64,000 nucleotides of DNA from Rebecca billardiae RCC1528 (lineage: Eukaryota > Protista > Haptophyta). A program made the position numbers and the translations under genes. The notes below the pieces were generated by a model that worked only from the letters and a program-made list of their open reading frames with translations, was not told where the DNA came from and searched no databases. Shown in pieces: positions 2,285-20,230 of the stretch. Where the stretch lies: NCBI GenBank assembly GCA_965240325.2, contig OZ251223.1:2232001-2296000 (forward strand), written 5' to 3'. Each line of letters begins with the position of its first letter. Position 1 is the stretch's first letter.

Positions 2285-3673
2285 CTACGAGTGCGAATCG
2301 AGCAGCAGAGGCCGATGTCGATGATGAAGCGTGTGCTGCAGAGCGCCTGCGAGCTGCTCGACGTCACCGTGCGGCGCAGCAGGGAACGCCGCGCTGAGGC
2401 GCCTGCCGATCAGCACAGCCGCGGCGTCGAGCACATGCGCTGGCACCAGCTCGCCCGGCATCGGCCTGGCGAGATCGGCGCGGCTCGAGGCTGCGGCGTC
2501 GGCAGCCGCTGAGGCGACACGCCCGTTTGCGGGCGCGTTGATACGAGCCACTCCCTCCGGTGGCAGTCCCGGCGGCGGCTTGGGCACGCGCTCGAGAGAA
2601 TGGGCGGGCAGCGAGGTACGGCGCGCGCGCAGCGAGAACATGCGCAGTCGCCCGGAAGATGCCCGCATCGGCCGGGGCGGCGAGCCGTCGCCCGCATCTG
2701 CTGCCCTGGGCGGAGGCGGGTGTGGCTGGAGCCGCGGCATGCGCGCGGGCGCCGGGAGCGCTCGAATGTCATTCGCCGGCAGAGCGTAGTACACGACGAG
2801 CAGCCCGTCACCGCGCCGGCCGAATGGGGCGGCGCATGTGATCGCTCGCAGCCTCGCCACGTCTGTCGGCGGGTGTGGCCCCGTGCCCGCCAGCCCAGGC
2901 ATGGCTATCGGGTGCAGAGGCAGCTCGGCGCTCGCGCGGCCGTGCGTGACGAGCGCTGCCCACGCATCTCGGTGCGTCGGCCCCGTGAGCGCGGCGAGGC
3001 GTGCGCGGCCATCGCGCGCCGCAAGCGAGAGCATGGGCGCGTGCGAGTCCGAGCCCTCCGCCGGCTCGCCCCGCCCGTCCTCCACCGCGGCCGGCGCGGC
3101 CGGCGCGAGGAGGTGCACTCCCAGCACGTCTTGTCGAGCGAGCAGGGGGCCGAGCCAGAGCTCCTCGAACGGGGGGGCGGCGAGCAGCGGGCGCATGACG
3201 CGCTCCTCGAACCCAGCGAAAGCGGCGAGCGTGCGCGGCGCCTCGTTCGCCTCGTCGTGTGCGCCGTTGAGCGCGGAAGCGGCCGTGTACGACGCGAGTG
3301 CGGCATCCAGCTGCCCCTTCAGCGCGCGGTGCATCTGCCGCAGCTCTGGCCCGTGCGCGCCTTCGAGGCCGTCGGCCAGAATCGTTGCCGTCAGGCTCGC
3401 GCCGCGCAGCTCATCGCTTGCCTCGCACACGAGCGCGACGAAGAAGTGCTCGCGAGGCTGCACGACAGCGCACACGCCGGCGATGCCAACACGACGCTCG
3501 CCTCGCGCGCAGCCCATGCCCTGGAGCATGCTTGCAAGCAGCTTGCAGAGCGGCGCGAGCCGCAGCTGCACCCTCCCGCTGAGCAGTGCGCTGCCATCCG
3601 GCATGGACACGATCAGGCAGCGGCCCAACGGGCTCACGACCAAGCCACAGTGGACATGCGCCGCCGCCGCCAT
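2285..3673 (-). CDS. Hypothetical protein (N-terminus possibly longin-like)
   Basis: 462-aa ORF with coding-like composition, divergent from the TPR gene at 3792. The domain call is weak. Confidence 0.6.
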   Translation of the reverse strand: MAAAAHVHCGLVVSPLGRCLIVSMPDGSALLSGRVQLRLAPLCKLLASMLQGMGCARGERRVGIAGVCAVVQPREHFFVALVCEASDELRGASLTATILADGLEGAHGPELRQMHRALKGQLDAALASYTAASALNGAHDEANEAPRTLAAFAGFEERVMRPLLAAPPFEELWLGPLLARQDVLGVHLLAPAAPAAVEDGRGEPAEGSDSHAPMLSLAARDGRARLAALTGPTHRDAWAALVTHGRASAELPLHPIAMPGLAGTGPHPPTDVARLRAITCAAPFGRRGDGLLVVYYALPANDIRALPAPARMPRLQPHPPPPRAADAGDGSPPRPMRASSGRLRMFSLRARRTSLPAHSLERVPKPPPGLPPEGVARINAPANGRVASAAADAAASSRADLARPMPGELVPAHVLDAAAVLIGRRLSAAFPAAPHGDVEQLAGALQHTLHHRHRPLLLDSHS

Positions 3674-3791
3674 CGCCCCCGGCCCGCGGGCGGGACACAG
3701 AGGGGCACCGGCGCGCTCCGCCCGGACCCCGGCCGGACGCCGTTGTGCCGCAGCCCGTTACTGGGAGAGCTGCTGTTCGTCACAATCGGCG

Positions 3792-5924
3792 ATGGCGTCG
3801 TCCACGGCGGGCTCGCGCAGGTCCACGCCGGCGAAGCTCAGCCCGTACAGCTCGATATCGACGTCGCGCTCGCGCCGCCTGGTGGAGGAGTACAAGCACA
3901 ACCGCAGGCTTGTCGAGCGGCGCACCCCCGACGACTACGTGACCCTCGGCCAGGCGTATCTCTCGAGCGGATACGCCGAGCCCGCGATCCGATGCTTCTC
4001 GGTCGCGCTCATGGAGGGCCCGCCGCGTGTGGACGCCATCTTCGGCCGTGCGAACGCGTACGAGCTGATGGGCCGGCACGAGACCGCGATCGTCGACTAC
4101 ACCGCCTGCATCCAGCTCGACCCGCTCACCCCGCAGCTCTTCAAGTCGCGCGCGAGCGCGCTGCTCTCTCTGGAGCGCTACGACGAAGCCCTGCGCGAGT
4201 GGCACGCGGCGATGGCGATCTCGTCGTTCGACGAGGACCCGGACGCAAAGGAGGCGTACGGGCGCACGCTGTTTGAGCTCGGGCGGCACGAGCAGGCCGA
4301 GGCCGAGCTCACCGCCCTCATCAACGCCGACGGCACGCGCGCGTTCTCGCACTACTTCCGCGCGTGCGCTCGGCTCGAGCTGTACGGCGAGGGCGACCAA
4401 GGCGCGGCGAGCGACTTCGCGAAGGCGCACTCGCTCGACCCGAGCCTGCCGACGGTGCTTCGCGAGCGCGCCGCCGAGGACCTCGCCGCCGGGCGCGTGC
4501 TCGCCGCCGCGAGCACGCTCGGCCGCTGCATCCGGCTCGACCCGTACGACGCGACGCTGCTGCTCGAGCGCGCGCGCTGCTGGCTGCGGCTGGACGAGCC
4601 GCAGGAGGAGTCGGCGCTCGCCGACCTGGAGGAGTGCACCGCGCGGCTGGAGGAGGTGTCGGGGCTCTCGTTCGGCGGCACCTCCGACGGCCACGAGCAG
4701 ACCCTCATCGACTGCCTCACCCAGCACACCGAGCTGCTGCTACGGCGCGGAGAGGCGCACCGCGCGGGGCCGCTGTACGACAAGCTGCTGCGCGCGCGCC
4801 CGCCGCCGGACGCGCCCGTCTCCGCGGTGATGGGCCGGCTGCGCGCGACGCTGGGCGCGCGCGCGCGCGCACTCGCGCTGGGCGCCGCGTCGAGCTTCCG
4901 CTCGGTCCGCGGCGCCGCCGCCACCACCGGGCCGTGGCCCGCCGACGTGGTGCGCGCCGTCGCGCTCGACTCGGACACGCTCTGTGACTTGTACGCGGCG
5001 GACGGCGTCGGGCTCGACCGGCTCGTCGAGGCGGTGCTCGAGCTGCCCGACGCGCACTACTGCGCGGCGCAGCTGGGCGCGCGGCGCGCGCGCGAGCTGC
5101 TCGCGCCCGGCGAGCTGCGCGCCGAGACGCTCGCGCGCGCGCTCGCCGACTTTGGCGCCGCGCACCGCGCCGGCTTTGACGTGCGCTCGCGCGGCCGAGG
5201 CCGGCCGGGCGTGCTGGTCACGACTGCGTGGGCGGAGGGGTGCCTGGAGCCCGCCCCAGACCCGGCGGCCGAGCACGGCGTGCCCAGCCTGCGCGCGCTC
5301 GCGGTGACCGCGCTCGCGCTCGCCGAGTGCGCCGCCGACGACGAGTTCCCGCCGCCGCCGCCCGACGGCGCGAGCGCGTCGGGCGCGATGGAGGATGCGG
5401 CCGATGACGGCGACGGCGTCGGCAGCGTGCGGCCGAGCAGCCAGGGGAGCGCGCGCGACGGCGCGCACGGCGTGCCCGAGGCGCCGTTCGTGCACGAGGC
5501 GCTGGCCGCGCACGTCGCGCGCTCGTGCCTGCCGCTCGCGCCCGTGGCGGCGGCGCGGCTCCCTCCGCTCGAGGTGGGGCGCACGCTCCTGCACCACGTC
5601 GGCTGCCTCTGGCGCGCGGCCAGGCCCACCCAAGTGCCGTTCGAGCCCGCGCGCTGGGTCGCGGTCGCCGCGTGCGGCGGGCTCTTGTGCGCATCGCACG
5701 CGTACGGGGGTGCGATGCCCGAGCCCGCGCCGAACAAGCAGGCCAAGGGCACGCCGCGCGCAGAGCCGCGCTCCCTGCTCGCCCTCGCCGTCACTGCGCT
5801 CGGGAGGGCCATGCCGCGAGACCCGGCCGTGCCGCCCGAGCTGCCCGCAGCGGTGCGTGCTGCGCGGCGCGCGCGCGCGACGGCCCCCGCGCGCCCGTAC
5901 ACGCAGCGCACGTCCCGGCTCTGA
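3792..5924 (+). CDS. TPR-repeat protein
   Basis: Repeats such as YVTLGQAYLSSGYAEPAIRCFSVAL, AIFGRANAYELMGRHETAIVDYTACIQLDP and LFKSRASALLSLERYDEAL. Likely start at 3792 (MASSTAG). The 3' end could be extended by splicing. Confidence 0.85.
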   Translation: MASSTAGSRRSTPAKLSPYSSISTSRSRRLVEEYKHNRRLVERRTPDDYVTLGQAYLSSGYAEPAIRCFSVALMEGPPRVDAIFGRANAYELMGRHETAIVDYTACIQLDPLTPQLFKSRASALLSLERYDEALREWHAAMAISSFDEDPDAKEAYGRTLFELGRHEQAEAELTALINADGTRAFSHYFRACARLELYGEGDQGAASDFAKAHSLDPSLPTVLRERAAEDLAAGRVLAAASTLGRCIRLDPYDATLLLERARCWLRLDEPQEESALADLEECTARLEEVSGLSFGGTSDGHEQTLIDCLTQHTELLLRRGEAHRAGPLYDKLLRARPPPDAPVSAVMGRLRATLGARARALALGAASSFRSVRGAAATTGPWPADVVRAVALDSDTLCDLYAADGVGLDRLVEAVLELPDAHYCAAQLGARRARELLAPGELRAETLARALADFGAAHRAGFDVRSRGRGRPGVLVTTAWAEGCLEPAPDPAAEHGVPSLRALAVTALALAECAADDEFPPPPPDGASASGAMEDAADDGDGVGSVRPSSQGSARDGAHGVPEAPFVHEALAAHVARSCLPLAPVAAARLPPLEVGRTLLHHVGCLWRAARPTQVPFEPARWVAVAACGGLLCASHAYGGAMPEPAPNKQAKGTPRAEPRSLLALAVTALGRAMPRDPAVPPELPAAVRAARRARATAPARPYTQRTSRL

Positions 5925-6352
5925 CTCCGTTCTGCCCCTCACAACCCGCCCGCGCGTGAACGCCGCGATCGGACGCTCGCGCTCCACCAGCCGGGCGTCA
6001 CTGCGGGCGCAGACGCAGAGGCGATGCACGCCTTCCGAGCCCTGTGGGAGAGTGCGCGCCCAGCCGAGCCGGAGGAAGGGGGCAAGCCCAGCGGTGGCGG
6101 CGGCAAGAAGGGCGGGAAGAATAAGTAGCTCCGGTGAGTGGCCGTAGAACCGCGCCGCCCGAGCCGGCTCTTGGAATATGCTGAGGGACCTGCGTACACT
6201 GTGGGCGCTCAGCCTCAGGGGACCTGCCAGTGTAACGGCCTTGAACGGGAGTAACGGCCAACGGGTTACGCGTAACCCTTGAGATCTACACTGACAATCG
6301 TACGTCGTCAGACACTACTGAACCAACGGACCGCGGGACCGTACTGTACATA

Positions 6353-7020
6353 CAGGTGGGTGAGGGCAGAATGAGACAAAATCCCGGATCGTGTTTTGCG
6401 CTCCACCACGATGGCGCTCACGCCCTTCGCGCACGTCGTCGTGGAGGGCATCAGACGAAGAGTTCAAGCTGCGAGTCTCGTGGGCTAACTCCATGCCGTT
6501 GAGGAGCACGAGCACCATCAAGTTTGTCTCACTTTGGGGGGGTGAGGGCACTTTGAGACAAACCGCGTGCGCACGCCCGACGAGCTCACCAACTGGGGAG
6601 AGCAAGCTTCCCATGGGCTCTTGGCGCGTGTCTGACGTCCCTACTACCTCCCATGGCATGGCCAGCCGTCAGGTTGGCGTCCCCTTGCAGTAGTAGACTA
6701 CCTTGCTCACGTCACTGAAGGGCACCGTGCATCGCGGTTCACGGCCGTCTCACAGTGGCGGGGCACGTTCGGCGGCTACGTTTGGTGCGTGCAGGCCAGG
6801 CATGGGCAGCGGGGCGGCCTGCAAACGAGCGGAGGTGCCAGGCATGCACCTTGGGCACACATGTGACGCGTCTCGACAGACTTGCGTCCACCTCACCGGG
6901 CGCTGTAGCGCGTGCGAGGCGGGCGCCATGCACCACGCCCAGTGGGCGCCACTGGACCGCCACTGGGCCGCCACCTTTGTCTCAAAGTGCCCTCTGTCTC
7001 ATTCTGCCCTCATCGACCTG
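6353..7020. mobile_element. Non-autonomous Tc1/mariner-type MITE (668 bp)
   Basis: TIRs CAGGTGGGTGAGGGCAGAATGAGACA / TGTCTCATTCTGCCCTCATCGACCTG, with TA on both flanks (6351-52, 7021-22). Internal copies of GAGGGCA...TGAGACAAA. Confidence 0.85.
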
Positions 7021-7092
7021 TACACGGTCGTACAGCGGTACTTCAGAACTTCGTCGCGCGGCCGCGGCCGCGCCCGGGCGGGCGCACCCACG

Positions 7093-10000
7093 ATGCCCCG
7101 ACGAGACGCGAGCGAGAAGGCGACGTGCGAGGGCTGCGACTACGAGTTCTGCGCGAAGAACCTGGCGAAGCACAAGCGGTCGTGCGCAGCCTACCAGGCG
7201 CTACTCTCGAGGCAGCAGCAAGCTTTCGCTGCGTTTCACAGCTTGAAGCGCGGCGCGGTTGAGCTCGCGTCCGACCCCATCGAGGACGCAGACTCTGACG
7301 ATGACGATGCAGGTGCTGCGGGCGCAGCGCGCGCGGAGCCGAGCCGCCGGCGCATCGACGAACCCGGCGACGTCCAGCGCGCCAGCTGGACGCCGCCAGA
7401 GCCGCGGGCGAGACAGCCCAGCTGGACGCCGCAAGGGCCGCGGGTGAGCTCGGCCGATGACTGCGCTGCTGCCGACGCACTGGATTTGACTCAAGCAGAT
7501 GGCGACGGCAACGGTGATGACGCGCCACGCGCACTGCTGCCGCCCTCGAGCCACGGGTCGCTGCTCATGGAGATGGCGCGCGTGAGCGAGCAGATGAGCG
7601 CGGAGATTCGCAGCCTGAAATCGCAGCTGGCCGGCCTGCCGAAGCAAGTGGCGCAAGCGGTTCCAGATGCGCTGCAGCGGGTCGAGAAGGAGCAGCGCGC
7701 GCGGCGCGACGCGGCTTCCGCAGGGTCTCCACTCGCGACGCAGATCGGCCTCTGCGGCAGCGCTGCCGACATCGTCCGGATCCCCGAGGCGCAGATGCGG
7801 CTCGACCACACGGGCGTGGATGAGGTGCTCGTCTGCAACGTCTGCTTCAAGTACGTGCGGATGGGCGAGCTCGGGAGCGGGTACGGCATTGGGGTCTTCA
7901 CCTCGCTGGAGCGGGTGCCGCAGCTCAAGCAGCACGTGATTGCGCACCTCCTCAGCCCTACCCACCTGGACGCTGCGGCGAAGGCGGCGCTGGAGCGCAA
8001 GACGGAGGCGCTCAACACGACGGCTGGCCGCAACTGCGCGCGGCGCGTGCTGATGGTCGTGCTCGAGCACCAGAGCTACCTCGCCTACGAGCGGCTGATC
8101 GCGACGGGGTCCGCCGAGGGCGTGGAGGTCGGCACGCTCAACCACAGCGCCGACTTCGCGCGCAAGCTCGTCGCGAGCATGCATGTCGCTGTCCTCGACG
8201 CCATCGAGCGGCTGCTCACGACCGTGGACCCGGCGACCCGCATGCGGCCGGCGTTCGCACTAGTCGCTGACAAGGCGACGCAAGGGCGGCAGACGGGCCA
8301 GATGGTCGGCGTGATCGTCATGACCAAGGGCGTCAAGGCGGCGCTGCTGCTCGGCATCGAGGTGGTGCGCGCTGCCCTCGCAGAGAGCGGCGCGATGATG
8401 GCGCCGGGCTCGGGCCGGTACCTCGCGCTGCACCTCCTCGCGACTCTCATCGGGGGCAAGCCGCTCAAGCTCAAGAAGGCGGACGTGCTCGAGCAGCTGA
8501 CAGCGGTCGGCTTCGACGGGCAGTACATGGGCGCTGAGCAGGGCAACGCCTCCGGGCTCGACGTCGCTGGCGCGATGTGCGCCCTCCTCGACATGCGCCC
8601 CGGCTGGCTGCTGCCGTGGTGGGACGGCGCGCACATGCTCGAGCTTGCGGTCGGCGATGCGCGCAAGCTTGCCGTGCTGCGCTGGTGGGCCGACCTGCAC
8701 GTGTTCATCTCCGGCGTGCAGTCGAAGTACCTGTACGGCAAAGGCTTCGACCGCGTGTACCTCGCCGCCCGCCGCGAGATGCACAAGCTCGGGCGCGAGG
8801 TTCAGCAGGAGGCGGAGCGCCAGGCGGCGGAGCGGGCGGAGCCGAGTGCCGACGCCGACGAGTCTGAGCTGCCGAGCGGCCTCGGCGACTCTGGCGACCT
8901 CGGCGACCTCGGCTACCGCGGCAACGGGCAGTGGGCGGTCGAGTGCATCGAGCGCGAGCGCCGCACGAGTTTGGGCGCGAGCGAGTTTCTCGTCAAGTGG
9001 GAGGGCTGGCCCGCGGAGCACAACTCGTGGGAGAAGGAGGCGAACATCGACTCGGGCCTGGTCGCCGAGTTCCGCAAGCGCGCGGATCGGCAGGCGGTCG
9101 AGAACATCCAGCGCGGCGCAGGCGCGGCGAGCGGCGCGCGCGAGCACGCCGGTGCCATCGCTCGGCCAGCCACGGCGGCGCGCAGCTCGACGTGCGCCGA
9201 CGCCGACTCGACCGCAGCGGCTCGCGCCCCGACCACGTCGCTCAGGCGAGCGCGCGCACGACGGCATCAGCGCGCGTGTGCGCGGGCAGTGGGGGCGACT
9301 CGCAGCGCTCTACCACTTCTGCGACACGCGCATGGCGCAGTCCGAGCGCAAGGTGTACAAAAACTTCCTGCGCAACCTGCACCTCTTCGTGCTGGACATG
9401 AATGAGAACGCGTCGCCGGTCGAGGTCGCCAAGGCGCGCTCGCTCATCACCGCCGTGCGGCTCATGGGCGCCATCGACGTCCTGCGGCACGTCAAGGACG
9501 CGTCCCTCGCCGAGCAAAAGGTGAACTCGCTGCTGTGGGAGCGCGATGCTGCCGCTCGCGCCTTTATCGAGCTCCTCCGCCAACTCGAAGGCGACCTGCG
9601 CCGAGGCGACGTGTCGCGCGTGATGCCCGCGCCGGCCGGCTCGCAGCAGCTGGGCGTGCCCGCTCTCGAGTTTCTGCGCGCCAACATGGCCGACCTCGAG
9701 AACTGCACGCTGCAGCTGATTCGCGAGCACAAGGCGATCTCGCTGACGCTGCCCTCGGAGCTGCGGCTCGGCACAGCTTTCCGCCGCGAGTTCCCGATGA
9801 TCGAGTCGGAGCCCAAAGCGGAGGAGGCGCGACGCGCGATCAAGTTCGCGCTGAACGGCGTCGCCGAGATGGCGAAGCGCATCGCTGACAACTACGAGCT
9901 GCGCAGGTTTCGGCAGCAGGGCAGCGCCGAGCATCTGCTTGCGGCGATGGCGGGATGCCTCGACCTGCGCAAGATGGCCAGCTTGAGCGTCGAGGGCGAG

Positions 10001-10708
10001 CAGTACCGCACTCATGCTGCTGGGCATCTGCGCACCCTCGCCGGCTGGGCGCGCCCGTCTGCCGGAACGCCCTCCGGCTCCGCGCGCGGCGCGCGCACCG
10101 TCGCCGACTTTGTCGGCGCGCCCGACTCTGCTTCCTGGTGGCACGGCATCACGCTGCCGCGAGACGAGGTGGTCGTCGGCGAGTTCAACGCGCTCTGCCG
10201 CTTGCTGATCGACGCGAGTGAGCTGCACCGCGCGCGGTGGCTCGGGGCGACCAGCTCGACCGTGCTCGCGCAGGACGTCTTCTCTCTCCCCAAGTTCTAC
10301 GAGTGCTGCCCCAGCTACCTCTACCTCTTCCAGCACTGCGCGCTCAAGGGCGCGTCTGAGGCGGTCGTCGAGGGCATGGGAGGCGTGTGGGACCGCTGCG
10401 CGACGCCAGGGCGCCACCTCTCGTTCAAGGCGGGCGTCGAGGAAGCAGTGGTCTGCTGGAACGCGCCCAAGCCGCACCTCGCCGAGTGCACCCCCTTCCT
10501 CGATCGCGCGCTGTCGATCCACTTCAAGGGCAGGGCGTGGCACTTCACGCACACCTCCGCGGCCACGCGGAACCGCGCCGGGCAGAGCAAGGTCGTGCAG
10601 AAGCACGGGCGCGGCGGGTCCAAGCTGCCCGCTGACATCTGGAAGGTGCACGGTGGCACGCGCGCGGCGCGCCCGCCGCCCAACACGGCGCCGGCGCGCG
10701 TGTGCTGA
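7093..10708 (+). CDS. hAT-like (KIAA1586/ZNF862-type) DDE transposase with zinc fingers and an inserted chromodomain; one inferred intron (~9152-9245)
   Basis: N-terminal C2HC finger (CEGC...HKRSC); CNVC...HLLSPTH finger; FALVADKAT (D1); AVGFDGQY (D2); WDGAHMLEL (CxxH-equivalent); chromodomain WAVECI...FLVKWEGWPAEHNSWE; CDTRM; SEAVVEGMG (E). A GT-AG intron 9152-9245 (or GC-AG 9122-9245) joins the two ORFs in frame. Confidence 0.8.
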
Positions 10709-10998
10709 CATCCCCCTGCCCCGTGCTCACGCCTGCGCAGTGAGCGCCCTGCGCTTGTCGCTTGCGCCAATGTCGGCATCGAGGTCTACGTCACGCAGCC
10801 CCGCGCACGCCGCCCCTGCGGGCCGGCGCGCACGAAAACAGCCATAACTCTTCACCATCAACTCGGATCGAGGTGCGGATTGAAGCATTTGCATCGTCAA
10901 GAGCCGGCGCCCGAGCGACCCGCGAGTCGCAACTCGGGGCGGCACTGGCGCGGTGGCGTATCGGATCTGATGTTACATCAGCCTATGGGGGTACTGCT

Positions 10999-12679
10999 TA
11001 TGGCCCGCGGTGCAGGGCGGAGCGCGCAGCGTGGAGCCCGCACCAGCGGGCCCGAACAACGTTTCAAAAAGATCTTTGATCAAGAAAAAAGGGACGGGGG
11101 ACGATTTTCATGGCTGGAGGAGACCGAGTTTCGAATTTTGAGACCCTGCCTCTCTAACATGCATCAAGGCCGAAAAAGGTCGCGCCCACGGCAAGTTCAT
11201 AGTAAAGCGTGGAGTGACGCCCGTCCAAAAAACTTCACGCCCTTTAGGATCCCTAACGTAACGAACCGTTACAAGCGATTTTTCCGGCCAATGAGATTGC
11301 AGCAAGGTCCAAGGAGCGATGACGTATCTAGATAGACTGATTGCCGCGAACCGATGTGACCATGTACGTCCCTTGAATCAGTTGAATCAACTATTCAATC
11401 GCGCCGTGTCTGTATCAGGAGCCGACCGGAGGCAAGGGTCAGTAGCCGATGGGCCAACCTCGGCGAATCTCAATACTATCTGACGCGAACGGACTTGGTT
11501 GGGCGCGCGCGTGGCCCCGGGCGGCGGCCCACCAGAGGCGGCCCGCGTTTGGAGGCGAGCCACGGGCACGAGGCTCACGAGCGACCGCCACGGGTGAGGA
11601 CGGCGATGGGCAGGTGCGCGCGGCGAATGGCGCCTGGAGCGCGCGGCTGCGGCGGGTCCCGACTGCCGTCGACATCGCGTTCGTCGTGCCCCCGCTCACT
11701 CCGCGCGCCCCCGCCGCCCCTGCCGCCCTGTCGATGCCTCGGCGCGGCCTTGCGCGGCCCCGGCGTGTCCGCGAGCCGGCGCCGCAGCCGCCGCCCTGTG
11801 TTCGGGCTCTCGCAAGCTCGGGGGCAGCGGCGCCTGATGCCGGACTGATCGATCTCTGAGCCTTCGACTTCACCACGCGCCGCCCTTGCCATGCCTTTCC
11901 GGGGTCTCCCAGAACTCTTCTTGATTGAGAGAGAGCAGGCGCGCCGACGATCCGAGTCCATCGTCGGTCGACTCTGAGCGAGGGCTACGCCTCGGAACTG
12001 AACGGTACTCTACGAGGAGGACGAGCTGCGCGGGCGACGGTGGTGCGTGACGTCCCCAGAGCTGGCCGTGCCTCTGCAACGCGTGCCGAGCCTGATCGAG
12101 GTGTGTCAGCTGCCCGTGCACGCGCGGAGAGTGCGCGAACCGGATCACCGGTGCCCTCGCACCTCGGCACCGTGCTCCCTCGGGCTGTCAGCTCCGCGTG
12201 GCCTGGCGTGCACGTAGAGTTGCGCTCATGCGTCGATCACGCCTCGCGCCCGCCTGTCGGCCGTCGCGCAGGCGCTGGTCGAACCCTACTCGGACCCTAC
12301 TCCTCCAGCCCTACTCCCGGGCGCTGCCGGCGCGGGGGGTGACCCCGGGGACAGCGGTCAGCAGCAGCGGCCCGAACGAATCCGCGGCCCCGCACCGTGC
12401 TCCCTGGCTGTCAGCTCCGCGTGGCCTGGTGTGCACGTGGAGTCGCGCTCATGCGTCGATCACGCCTCGTCGCATCCGCCTGTACACAATCGGCGCCGCG
12501 CCGGCGGCTGCAATGGGCCCGCCCGGCGCGGCGGGCGGCGGCGCGCCGCTGATGGAGTCTAGTTGTACGGGCATATGCAACTGGTCTGTCAATAGACGAC
12601 TGCGACGGAGGGTGCACCGCCACCGCGGGCCCTGAACTACGTTCGTTCTACGGAAAAAGGACCGCGGAACGCGGTCATT
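10999..12679 (+). mobile_element. Helentron/Helitron2-like non-autonomous element, copy A
   Basis: 5' GGCCCGCGGTG (11002) is inverted to subterminal CACCGCGGGCC (12621-31), followed by hairpin GACCGCG-GAA-CGCGGTC (12660-76) and ATT. Both ends are homologous to 29725-31020. Confidence 0.7.
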
Positions 12680-14199
12680 CTATTGCTCGATAGTGATGAT
12701 GATCACTTTTTAGCTAACTATCATAGTATCTGTCGGAAGTTCTGTCGGAAGACCATGGGTACACGACCGCGTGTAGTTTGTATCAGTTATGATCCAGGGG
12801 GCTGGCCAGGGTAGGGCTGGAGGCTTCGGCACTAATCGGCCGCCAGCCTGATCACCCGGAGCCCGTTATAAAGGGGAATTTTAAAAAGATGCACGACTGT
12901 TATAGTTATACCATCGGCGACGGCTTCATGGGCGGTGACAGTTGGCGGGCGTCAATCTCGCCTGCCTGAGCTGTGTGCGTCTCTTATTCTTAGTAAACTG
13001 TTGATGATCGCAATGCTTCTCAAGTGACCTTTTTTTCTCGGCGCCAAAAAAAGTTTCCTTCGCGCGAAAAAAGTTTTCCTTCGCGCCAAAAAGTTTTTTC
13101 TTTCGCCGCTGCCGCGGTGGGGCCCAGCAACCGGTCCAGACCTCAGGATTTGGGAAACTCGGAAATTCAAAACCCGCCGCGTGCGCCGCGTGCGCCGCCA
13201 CAGCCATCCGCCGCGAGGCGCCGCCGGCTGCCGCGCCGCCGTGGTCGTAGACGTGCACGCGGCGATGGCGCACGCCGTCGGGCAGAGGCATAGAGCCTTT
13301 CTGCGCCGCCCTGCGCCGGGCGACTCGCGACTGCCCATCTTCTCCGCGCCTTGAGCCCGCACGGACGTGTGCGCCGCCTCTCACTTCAGCCGTGCTGTCA
13401 TCCCCGCAAAGTATGCGCGCGCTGAGAGCAACCCGAGGCGCGCATCCCAGGAAGGTGTGAGCCATGTTACAGTACAGTCGTAGGCGCGCGCCATGGTGCC
13501 CAGCGGCTTCCCGCGCGTGCGTGCCTCTCTGATGCCTCGGCAGGCAAGGCGCCCATGTCTCTGGCTGAATGCGGCGGCGGCGCAAGCTCGTGCTCGCGCG
13601 GGCCTCAAGCTGACCTTCGAGGTGCGAGGGCGCGAAGCGCTGCGCCACGCGCAAGCTACAGTAGTTCACCGCCTCGCTACCGCCCCGCTGCGTCCCATCG
13701 GAAGCTCTACTGGACATCGCGCGGCCTCGCCCTGGCGGCGGTAGGCGCGAGCGAGGTGGCGGCGGCGGCGGCGTTCAGCTGAGTCCGGGAGCGCGGCGCA
13801 CAGATTTCCACCCGGAAACTCTCCTGAGGAGAGTTTTGGGTTTGGGCTGGCAAATCCCGAGGTCTGGACCTGGCTGATTGAGACCCAGCCGTTTCATCTC
13901 CGCGACGTCGATTTTCTGGCGACGCCGCGGAGCGGCTGGCACTTTCCAGTAGCGGCGGCTCAGAGGCCGCCATCGTGCCGATGGCGAAGCGGCGCACGAA
14001 GCGGAACCTCGTCGAGCGAAGCCCCTCGCACGGAGGCGCGGGGGGCGCCAATGACGGCGCGCGCGCCGCCGCCGCGAATCGGAGCGGTCCGGATGGGTCT
14101 GGGCCGGCTGTCTCGCCTGGTGCGCGCCGCGTGCGCGCCGCGCTCACCGCACGCGCGCTGCTTGTTTGCACCCGGGTGGTTTTGGGCGCGACGGGCACA

Positions 14200-19177: not shown

Positions 19178-20230
19178 CGTGCCGCCGCTGTTGCGAGCGC
19201 GCGGCGGGCAGGCGGCGGCGCGGCGGCCCGGCTTGCGCACCCGCGGTGCGGCGGCTTGTGAGGGCGTGCTCCGCTGGGCGGGGCGCGCGCCGGATGTGCC
19301 CGCGGAGCCGGCGCTTGCGGACGGGCTGTTGCGGCAGAGCTTTGGGCGCCCTCCTGCGCCGCGCGTCTTGCGCCACGCCTCTCTCGCCTCGCCTCAGGGC
19401 AGCGCGCATGCGCGCGCCGCCTCGAGGCCAGCGCTGCCCGCGCCGCACGGCCGACCGCGCGCGCGCCGTGCGCGGCGTGGTCGGGAAGGAACGGGCGCTG
19501 CGTGCCGGGCGAGTTGGCGACACCACAGGCGCACGCCATGCCGCCACGCGACGCCGCAAAAAGGCACGAAAGTTGATCTGCAGAAGCTGTTGACGAGTGC
19601 TGATTACTTGTCGTGCCAAGCCAGACCTGAGCTTGAGGAAGATGATGAAAGAGCATCAGCGCCAGAAAAGCGTCGCATTCCGCACTTCTACACGCCCCTA
19701 CAGGGATGAGCATCCATGCGCAAGAGTAGCCCGCGCGCCCGTCTGGCACTGATCTGTGTCTCTGTGATCGTTCAGACAAGGGTCACAGCATGGCTGTGCA
19801 CACCATCTGTGCGCGAAGTCGAAAGAGGCATGCAACGGGCCGACGACACGCTCGTCAAGGCGTCGCGTGGCGGCATGGCGTGCGCCTGTGGTGTCGCCAA
19901 CTCGCCCGGCACGCAGCGCCCGTTCCTTCCCGACCACGCCGCGCACGGCGCGCGCGCGGTCGGCCGTGCGGCGCGGGCAGCGCTGGCCTCGAGGCGGCGC
20001 GCGCATGCGCGCTGCCCTGAGGCGAGGCGAGAGAGGCGTGGCGCAAGACGCGCGGCGCAGGAGGGCGCCCAAAGCTCTGCCGCAACAGCCCGTCCGCAAG
20101 CGCCGGCTCCGCGGGCACATCCGGCGCGCGCCCCGCCCAGCGGAGCACGCCCTCACAAGCCGCCGCACCGCGGGTGCGCAAGCCGGGCCGCCGCGCCGCC
20201 GCCTGCCCGCCGCTCGCAAGCGGCGGCACG
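19178..20230. repeat. Palindromic module (~370-bp arms, ~300-bp spacer)
   Basis: CGTGCCGCCGC...GCGGCGGCACG ends. The ORF track shows identical peptides on opposite strands. Confidence 0.85.

Follow-up and report, generated by a model that had tools for sequence, protein, structure and literature searches.

What kind of gene carries the catalytic motifs of a cut-and-paste transposase and, in the midst of them, a chromodomain: that of a mobile element able to read chromatin, or that of a host protein derived from one? The question is raised by a 64,000-nucleotide stretch of the haptophyte Rebecca billardiae RCC1528 (GenBank assembly GCA_965240325.2, contig OZ251223.1, positions 2,232,001 to 2,296,000 of the forward strand; hereafter the window), which is C3:2232001-2296000 of a 72-Mb host genome in 41 contigs and has a G+C content of approximately 67% throughout. 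A previous sequence-only reading had proposed both answers for the gene at 7093-10708. We find that window positions 6164-10907 form a DNA transposon of 4.7 kb, whose terminal inverted repeat is 13 bp long and whose target-site duplication, CGCCCGAG, is 8 bp long. We are fairly confident that it is the sole full-length copy of a transposon from a divergent hAT branch, that its transposase carries a chromodomain in a loop of the insertion domain and that this particular copy is damaged. Features described here lie on the + strand unless their strand is left unassigned.

The ends of the element are sharply defined. The identical octamer CGCCCGAG directly abuts both of them, as the left (6156-6163) and right (10908-10915) target-site duplications. 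The left terminal inverted repeat, CCGGCTCTTGGAA (6164-6176), begins exactly where the homology of all copies begins, and comparison with internally deleted derivatives shows that the right one, CAAGAGCCGG (10898-10907), is a remnant of 10 of the 13 bp. The derivatives themselves carry the 13-bp terminal repeat pair CCGGCTCTTGGAA and TTCCAAGAGCCGG; homology in the other copies starts at the first and stops at the second wherever an end was examined (the left end of copy L033 was not located). Among the nine other copies that have both ends, seven are flanked by perfect 8-bp duplications, all of different sequence, and two by imperfect ones. Both the 8-bp duplication and the short terminal inverted repeats are features of hAT elements. 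Inside the left end, the 5' subterminal region (6177-6276), common to all derivatives at 90-96%, holds the short repeats GGGACCTGC and GTAACGG. Motifs of these types also occur, in both orientations, at the right end of the derivatives, and they are probably transposase-binding sites. The terminal repeat is found outside this genome as well: CCGGCTCTTRGAA is kept upstream of homologous genes in two metagenome contigs, L037 and L038, where CCGGCTCTTAGAA, a 12/13 match to the left terminal repeat, lies 425 bp and 200 bp from these genes, respectively.

A DNA census of the genome recovered the window copy, ten derivatives and a few fragments. Each derivative is 2.6 kb long, and all ten share one internal deletion (7600-9496). 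The deleted segment, which occurs once in the genome, encodes the catalytic core together with the chromodomain. In the DNA alignment, the derivatives correspond to window positions 6164-6276, 7029-7599 and 9497-10905, plus approximately 290 bp of 3' end that is absent from the window copy. The protein comparison agrees: ten other genomic loci match the first 171 residues and the greater portion of part two of the transposase open reading frame (ORF), and residues ~170-686 plus the first 80-110 residues of part two are single-copy. When a core profile of the transposase family was run against the genome, the window copy was the only matching locus, and it is the sole full-length copy in the 72 Mb. 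Pairwise identity among six or seven of the derivatives is 98.6-100%, and two are about 92% identical. The copy alignment that the sequence-only reading had suggested as a check on copy number and ends thus yields one full-length copy and ten derivatives, with 13-bp repeats and 8-bp duplications. The family picture is classical: one autonomous-type element and its internally deleted dependants.

This picture bears directly on the second answer, that the gene encodes a host chromatin protein domesticated from a transposase. A core that is single-copy in the genome and the presence of a chromatin reader domain are what such a protein might be expected to show. The gene, however, is bounded by terminal inverted repeats and by an 8-bp target-site duplication that is intact; it is the full-length member of its family, beside ten deletion derivatives, and its relatives have the same terminal repeat; the window copy also has a frame break, a nested element and a terminal deletion. 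Because of the terminal repeats, the duplication and the ten deletion derivatives, we regard the locus as a transposon, not a domesticated gene. The same three features rule out the domesticated chromatin protein as a candidate, and we consider that alternative from the sequence-only reading extremely improbable.

The transposase is encoded by two long overlapping + strand ORFs, 6703-9405 in frame 1 and 8645-10708 in frame 2. Its first part (7093-9151, 686 codons) starts with MPRRDASEK, which aligns with the start of the homologue P0003, and frame 1 continues beyond it to a stop at 9403-9405. The second part (9246-10708, frame 2, stop at 10706-10708) encodes what remains of the insertion domain, followed by the C-terminal catalytic helix, and over residues 3-468 it shows 61% identity to the homologue P0002. 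Neither part contains a stop, over 686 and 486 codons respectively. The first predicted catalytic Asp (D393) falls in ADKAT (8266-8280), which is invariant in close homologues and kept in at least 90% of 94 family members; the second (D475) falls in FDGQY (8512-8526), which is invariant or nearly so. WDGAHMLEL (8620-8646), in which W, D, A, H, E and L are invariant, contains a DxxH motif that we take, from established motif definitions, to be the counterpart of the hAT C/DxxH motif, in keeping with the Hermes fold match described below. The CDTRMAQSERKVYKNF motif (C.TRM..SE; 9320-9367) is the presumed counterpart of the hAT R-W motif, with R-M in this clade and R-F in most of the family, and its Arg-Met position presumably corresponds to R318/W319 of Hermes. 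In GASEAVVEG (SE..VEG; 10349-10375; family consensus E...E..G), the Glu of SE is the presumed third catalytic residue: in the model it opens the final long helix of the RNase H fold, the place to which Hermes E572 is mapped by range only.

For the fold, we modeled P0002, an uninterrupted 1138-residue homologue from contig L037 that is 59-61% identical to the window protein. The AlphaFold2 model of P0002:270-1138, built from a 94-row alignment, has a confidence (pLDDT) of 84 and a predicted template-modeling score (pTM) of 0.81. The twelve best Foldseek matches of this model in PDB are all Hermes. The model shows the Hermes architecture, an RNase H-like catalytic domain split by a large all-alpha insertion domain, with D393 on strand beta-1 and D475 at the end of strand beta-4. 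Judged by this model, the element's transposase has the hAT fold, which bears out the earlier description of a hAT-like transposase.

The relatives of this transposase are numerous and without names. The core profile retrieved 665 cluster representatives in metagenomes (E <= 0.001), and in a cluster look-up all family relatives were unnamed metagenome proteins. A word-based search with the core gave six relatives, of which three contain a Chromo domain. DUF4371/FAM200-ZBED5 clusters were suggested, at 0.88, by a language-model look-alike search, and we treat them as a lead only. We consider it probable, as part of the overall explanation given at the outset, that the element is part of a hAT-superfamily branch that is divergent in sequence and unannotated. 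Because the 665 representatives are unnamed and without Pfam hAT matches (38 long members tested), the family represents an annotation gap for transposons of GC-rich marine protists.

Is the embedded domain a real chromodomain? Located at 8932-9081, it matches Pfam Chromo PF00385 over the full profile (1-53) at residues 614-663, with an E value of 4e-12 and 46.3 bits against a cut-off of 25.1, and it is the only Pfam domain in the first ORF part when read from the ATG at 7093; the second ORF part has no Pfam match of any kind. Its best sequence matches in PDB are CBX2 (1e-10) and CBX7 (9e-9), and W614, W636 and W639 align with the cage Phe and two Trp of these proteins. The window model has strands at 387-395, 401-407 and 416-419 and a helix at 425-450, forming a three-stranded sheet against a C-terminal helix, and superposes on solved chromodomains with a root-mean-square deviation of 1.0-1.6 Å, SUV39H1 and Rhino being the closest by structure. 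The chromodomain is genuine. The aromatic residues noticed earlier at three cage-like positions are counterparts of the CBX2/CBX7 cage, and they are kept in the diverged homologues P0001, P0002 and P0004 as W or F, W, and W.

The position of the domain also agrees with what had been proposed from the letters of the sequence. It follows ADKAT, FDGQY and WDGAH and precedes C.TRM..SE and SE..VEG; on the P0002 fold this places it between the long helix after DxxH and the helix bearing TR(M/F), in a loop of the all-alpha insertion domain. The acidic linker that had been noted in front of it is an acidic, Gly- and Ser-rich disordered stretch at 8800-8931, with pLDDT below 50 in both models, and is absent from relatives without the chromodomain. 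Since the stretches on either side of the chromodomain have pLDDT below 50 in both models, the domain seems to be tethered to the helical domain by flexible linkers.

The insertion can be placed within the family. The spacing from YGKG to C.TRF is 24-34 residues in 26 relatives, compared with 186 in P0002 and 169 in P0004, and P0005 and P0006 (39-44% identity) are without the chromodomain segment. We think, with the same good confidence as for the whole explanation of which this is a part, that one small clade (the window copy, P0001, P0002, P0004 and P0033) gained approximately 150 residues, consisting of a disordered linker, the chromodomain and a second disordered linker. A genome search for a chromodomain donor gave three weak matches only (30-39% identity). 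The weak matches at G000:C3:1106646-1106882 and G000:C39:27278-27748 (38-39% identity) lie in open frames of 1145 and 861 residues. Separately, P0096, a distant family member (a metagenome protein of 534 amino acids, ~28% identical), has a chromodomain-like segment (E 6e-4 to that of the window) directly after the DxxH position and then ends; the capture in this protein may be older or independent, or the copy may be truncated or rearranged.

Several observations weigh against this account of the element. Pfam hAT models (Dimer_Tnp_hAT PF05699, DUF4371 PF14291 and related models) matched neither part of the window ORF to E = 1, none of P0002, P0003, P0005 and P0006 to E = 5, and none of 38 long family members to E = 0.01. 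The family-core profile returned chance matches only among PDB sequences, and Hermes was not recovered. Because the Pfam hAT models and the family profile fail, the case for hAT membership is built on the fold, the motifs and the 8-bp duplication. For the fold of the whole protein, the evidence is that of the homologue P0002, the two ORF parts of the window having been kept separate, and the Trp of the Hermes R-W motif is replaced by Met in the window protein. Between the window copy and the derivatives the divergence is 3-6%, and the immediate parent of the derivatives was therefore another copy, absent from the assembly. Across eleven copies, insertion-site preference, assessed by the GC content of the flanks and by the duplication sequences, showed no clear pattern, and a search of sequencing runs found no RNA run containing the locus.

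What might the chromodomain do? We propose that the flexibly tethered domain would bind methylated histone H3 tails, that this binding would keep the transposase, or the transpososome, at marked chromatin, and that the element's integration would be biased as a result, as chromodomains do for chromovirus integrases. Histone-guided targeting of this kind is inferred. In its full form the proposal is that a catalytically competent hAT-fold transposase reads H3K9 or H3K27 methylation through its embedded chromodomain and steers excision or integration by chromatin state; such an enzyme would be a natural DDE transposase guided by a histone reader, with an origin independent of the chromoviruses. 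We regard this as somewhat less likely than not. Activity of a chromodomain-bearing transposase is favored by the uninterrupted ORFs of P0002 and P0004, by a genome in which near-identical derivatives coexist with the window copy as the only family core, and by a ratio of nonsynonymous to synonymous substitution (Ka/Ks) of 0.43 on the C-terminal half. Preference between H3K9 and H3K27 is not readable from sequence.

The same domain could instead guide the transposase to the element's own copies, which are likely to lie in methylated chromatin, where it would act in access to the donor site, in excision, or by feeding back on the silencing of the element. A real, cage-intact chromodomain on flexible linkers suits this use too, as do eleven insertion sites without obvious compositional preference; beyond that, the idea draws on general transposon biology. 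The present evidence does not separate donor from target recognition. The only experimentally supported precedent named in the papers found, reported second-hand in PMC6839031 and PMC8502044, is target choice by integrase chromodomains; we consider the donor-site role rather unlikely, though still a live alternative.

Alternatively, the chromodomain may be a passenger, captured by chance in a tolerant loop, with no role or even a disabling one, in a clade that is dying. The insertion loop does vary in length within the family (24-34 residues), and the window copy, L038 and P0033 are all damaged. Against this, the segment and its three cage aromatics have been kept in copies that are just 57-64% identical overall, two of the cage-keeping copies are long uninterrupted ORFs, and deletion derivatives that only this family's enzyme should recognize have spread very recently. 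We find a mere passenger improbable.

Is the gene of the window copy intact? In the sequence-only reading it looked so, after removal of one intron. The frame-break zone spans 9152-9250, with a candidate intron at 9152-9245 and a change of the coding frame from 1 to 2 at ~9245-9249. In its strongest form, the intron explanation states that 9152-9245 is a real 94-nt GT-AG intron, that the spliced mRNA encodes an intact transposase of ~1170 residues and that the window copy is the active source of the ten derivatives. Consistent with this, both ORF parts are stop-free over their 686 and 486 codons, GT at 9152 and AG at 9244-9245 restore the frame, the codon bias switches exactly at the proposed acceptor, and no family core other than that of the window copy occurs in a genome whose derivatives are 98.6-100% identical to one another. 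However, 84% of frame-1 third positions across 9152-9245 are G or C, as in coding sequence, compared with 61% in frame 2, and the profile switches only at 9245-9249. P0002 and P0004 are single uninterrupted ORFs across the linker, and in P0033 and the decayed L038 copy the chromodomain and the TR motif stand in one frame. The two frames overlap without stops, frame 2 from 8645 onward and frame 1 as far as 9405, so that the loss of any 3k+1 bases restores an ORF, and six GT-AG pairs within 180 nt would do so. Note that candidate exon pairs were joined solely to test for stop codons.

Sequencing data speak to the break from another side. In addition to the lack of an RNA run containing the locus, which counts against the intron, one run (X1, kept as short contigs) has 17% of the locus words. 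Its contigs match 8712-8903, 9219-9369 and 9389-9539 without differences and are unable to show splicing. Because an unspliced X1 contig reproduces 9219-9369 exactly, a local assembly error at that place is argued against. On the codon bias and the intronless homologues, we judge that the frame break is real and likely to be a frameshift; a real intron, and with it an intact gene that serves as the active source of the derivatives, seems doubtful.

With a probable frameshift in its transposase gene, the window copy bears further damage. A nested element resembling a miniature inverted-repeat transposable element (MITE), 672 bp long with 28-nt inverted ends (inverted repeat I4, 93% complementary), occupies 6351-7022, strand unassigned, ~70 bp upstream of the transposase ATG. 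The derivative copies lack it. The genome contains at least 40 copies of this MITE-like element, some of them 100% identical, and because several are 98-100% identical, this MITE family has moved very recently. At the right end, ~290 bp of 3' subterminal sequence is gone, and with it the GGGACCTGC-type repeats present at either end of the derivatives, so the window copy does not have two complete ends with subterminal repeats. Because of the frame break, the MITE between the 5' end and the ATG, and a right end of 10 bp without subterminal repeats, the window copy is probably no longer autonomous. Between the window copy and the derivatives, Ka/Ks is ~1.3-1.45 over the N-terminal 169 codons and 0.43 over the C-terminal 400, with Ks ~0.045; the latter ratio indicates that part of the divergence arose under constraint. 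The missing 3' subterminal sequence itself, represented by L027:8590-8882 of the derivatives, contains GC-rich, CGCG-type tracts, and two motifs of ~40-50 bp from this region are present at many unrelated sites in the genome.

How does the element compare with known systems? With Hermes and other hAT elements (hobo, Ac and Tam3) it shares the 8-bp target-site duplication, short terminal inverted repeats, an RNase H-like DDE core that a large all-alpha insertion domain splits in two, a DxxH motif downstream of the second Asp, and near the C-terminus a helix with S-E...G...R..L; non-autonomous copies with internal deletions are likewise known from Ac and Ds. It differs in that the window family has no Pfam hAT match and no sequence-level link to Hermes, and in that the R-W motif is R-M in the window element and R-F in the wider family. 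The duplications of hAT elements take the consensus forms nTnnnnAn and nnnTAnnn, whereas those of the window family fit neither. Moreover, approximately 150 residues, including the chromodomain, lie inside the insertion domain of the window element.

The integrases of chromoviruses (Ty3/gypsy) are, like this transposase, DDE enzymes of mobile elements with a chromodomain. Unlike the window element, which is cut-and-paste and has the domain embedded in its catalytic region, chromoviruses are copy-and-paste retroelements with the chromodomain at the integrase C-terminus; the resemblance is in likely function only, and the window element stands outside that group. For long terminal repeat (LTR) elements, PMC6839031 and PMC12477816, citing Gao et al. 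2008, associate the chromodomain with integration into gene-poor heterochromatin. Polinton/Maverick elements and adintoviruses provide a parallel among DNA elements, in that their retroviral-type integrase has a predicted chromodomain, for which PMC8502044 suggests an influence on the choice of site. They differ from the window element in their retroviral-type integrase, in being large and virus-like, in the terminal position of the domain and in the fold family of the full enzyme. In full-text literature searches, no chromodomain was reported for a hAT or any other cut-and-paste transposase, and, in the literature searched, no chromodomain embedded within the catalytic region of a mobile-element enzyme was found; mobile-element chromodomains appeared there solely at the C-terminus of LTR-retroelement and Polinton-like integrases.

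If the domain works as proposed, cut-and-paste transposons would also have evolved histone reading for choosing their sites of action. The hAT insertion domain would then be able to accommodate an entire folded module in one loop, and the transposase would offer a compact natural template for DNA integration biased by chromatin state.

The first ORF part has two further candidate modules ahead of the catalytic core. An N-terminal CxxC...HxxxC zinc-finger-like motif (7126-7185), kept in P0003, gives a weak Pfam zf-C2HC_2 match (E 0.42) and may act as a zinc finger. A BED-like CxxC...HxxxxxH finger (7834-7965) precedes the core; its pattern is present in the family consensus, it forms a beta-beta-alpha unit in the window model, and a zf-BED match was obtained in one family member only (E 0.002).

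Homologous copies elsewhere also have mobile DNA nearby. On the contig of P0002, at L037:988-1389, the left terminal repeat (at L037:1347) lies within an ORF that has a weak Pfam match to the hAT dimerization domain, and this copy may have landed in another hAT element. A fragment of a Mutator-like (MULE) transposase (PF10551) lies at L038:1680-2222, upstream of the decayed homologue, as another sign of transposon-rich surroundings.

In the window, a TPR-repeat ORF of 1028 codons at 2838-5924 (+; TPR_2, E 7e-14) ends ~240 bp before the left end of the transposon and is probably a neighboring host gene. Downstream of the transposon lies a repeat-rich stretch. Short repeats at 10998-11335, 12603-13002 and 19277-20000 also flank copies L028, L030, L031, L034 and L035, and the 5' region of L034 has one of these repeats nested within it. 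Because their flanks share these short repeats, copies of the transposon tend to sit among other repeats.

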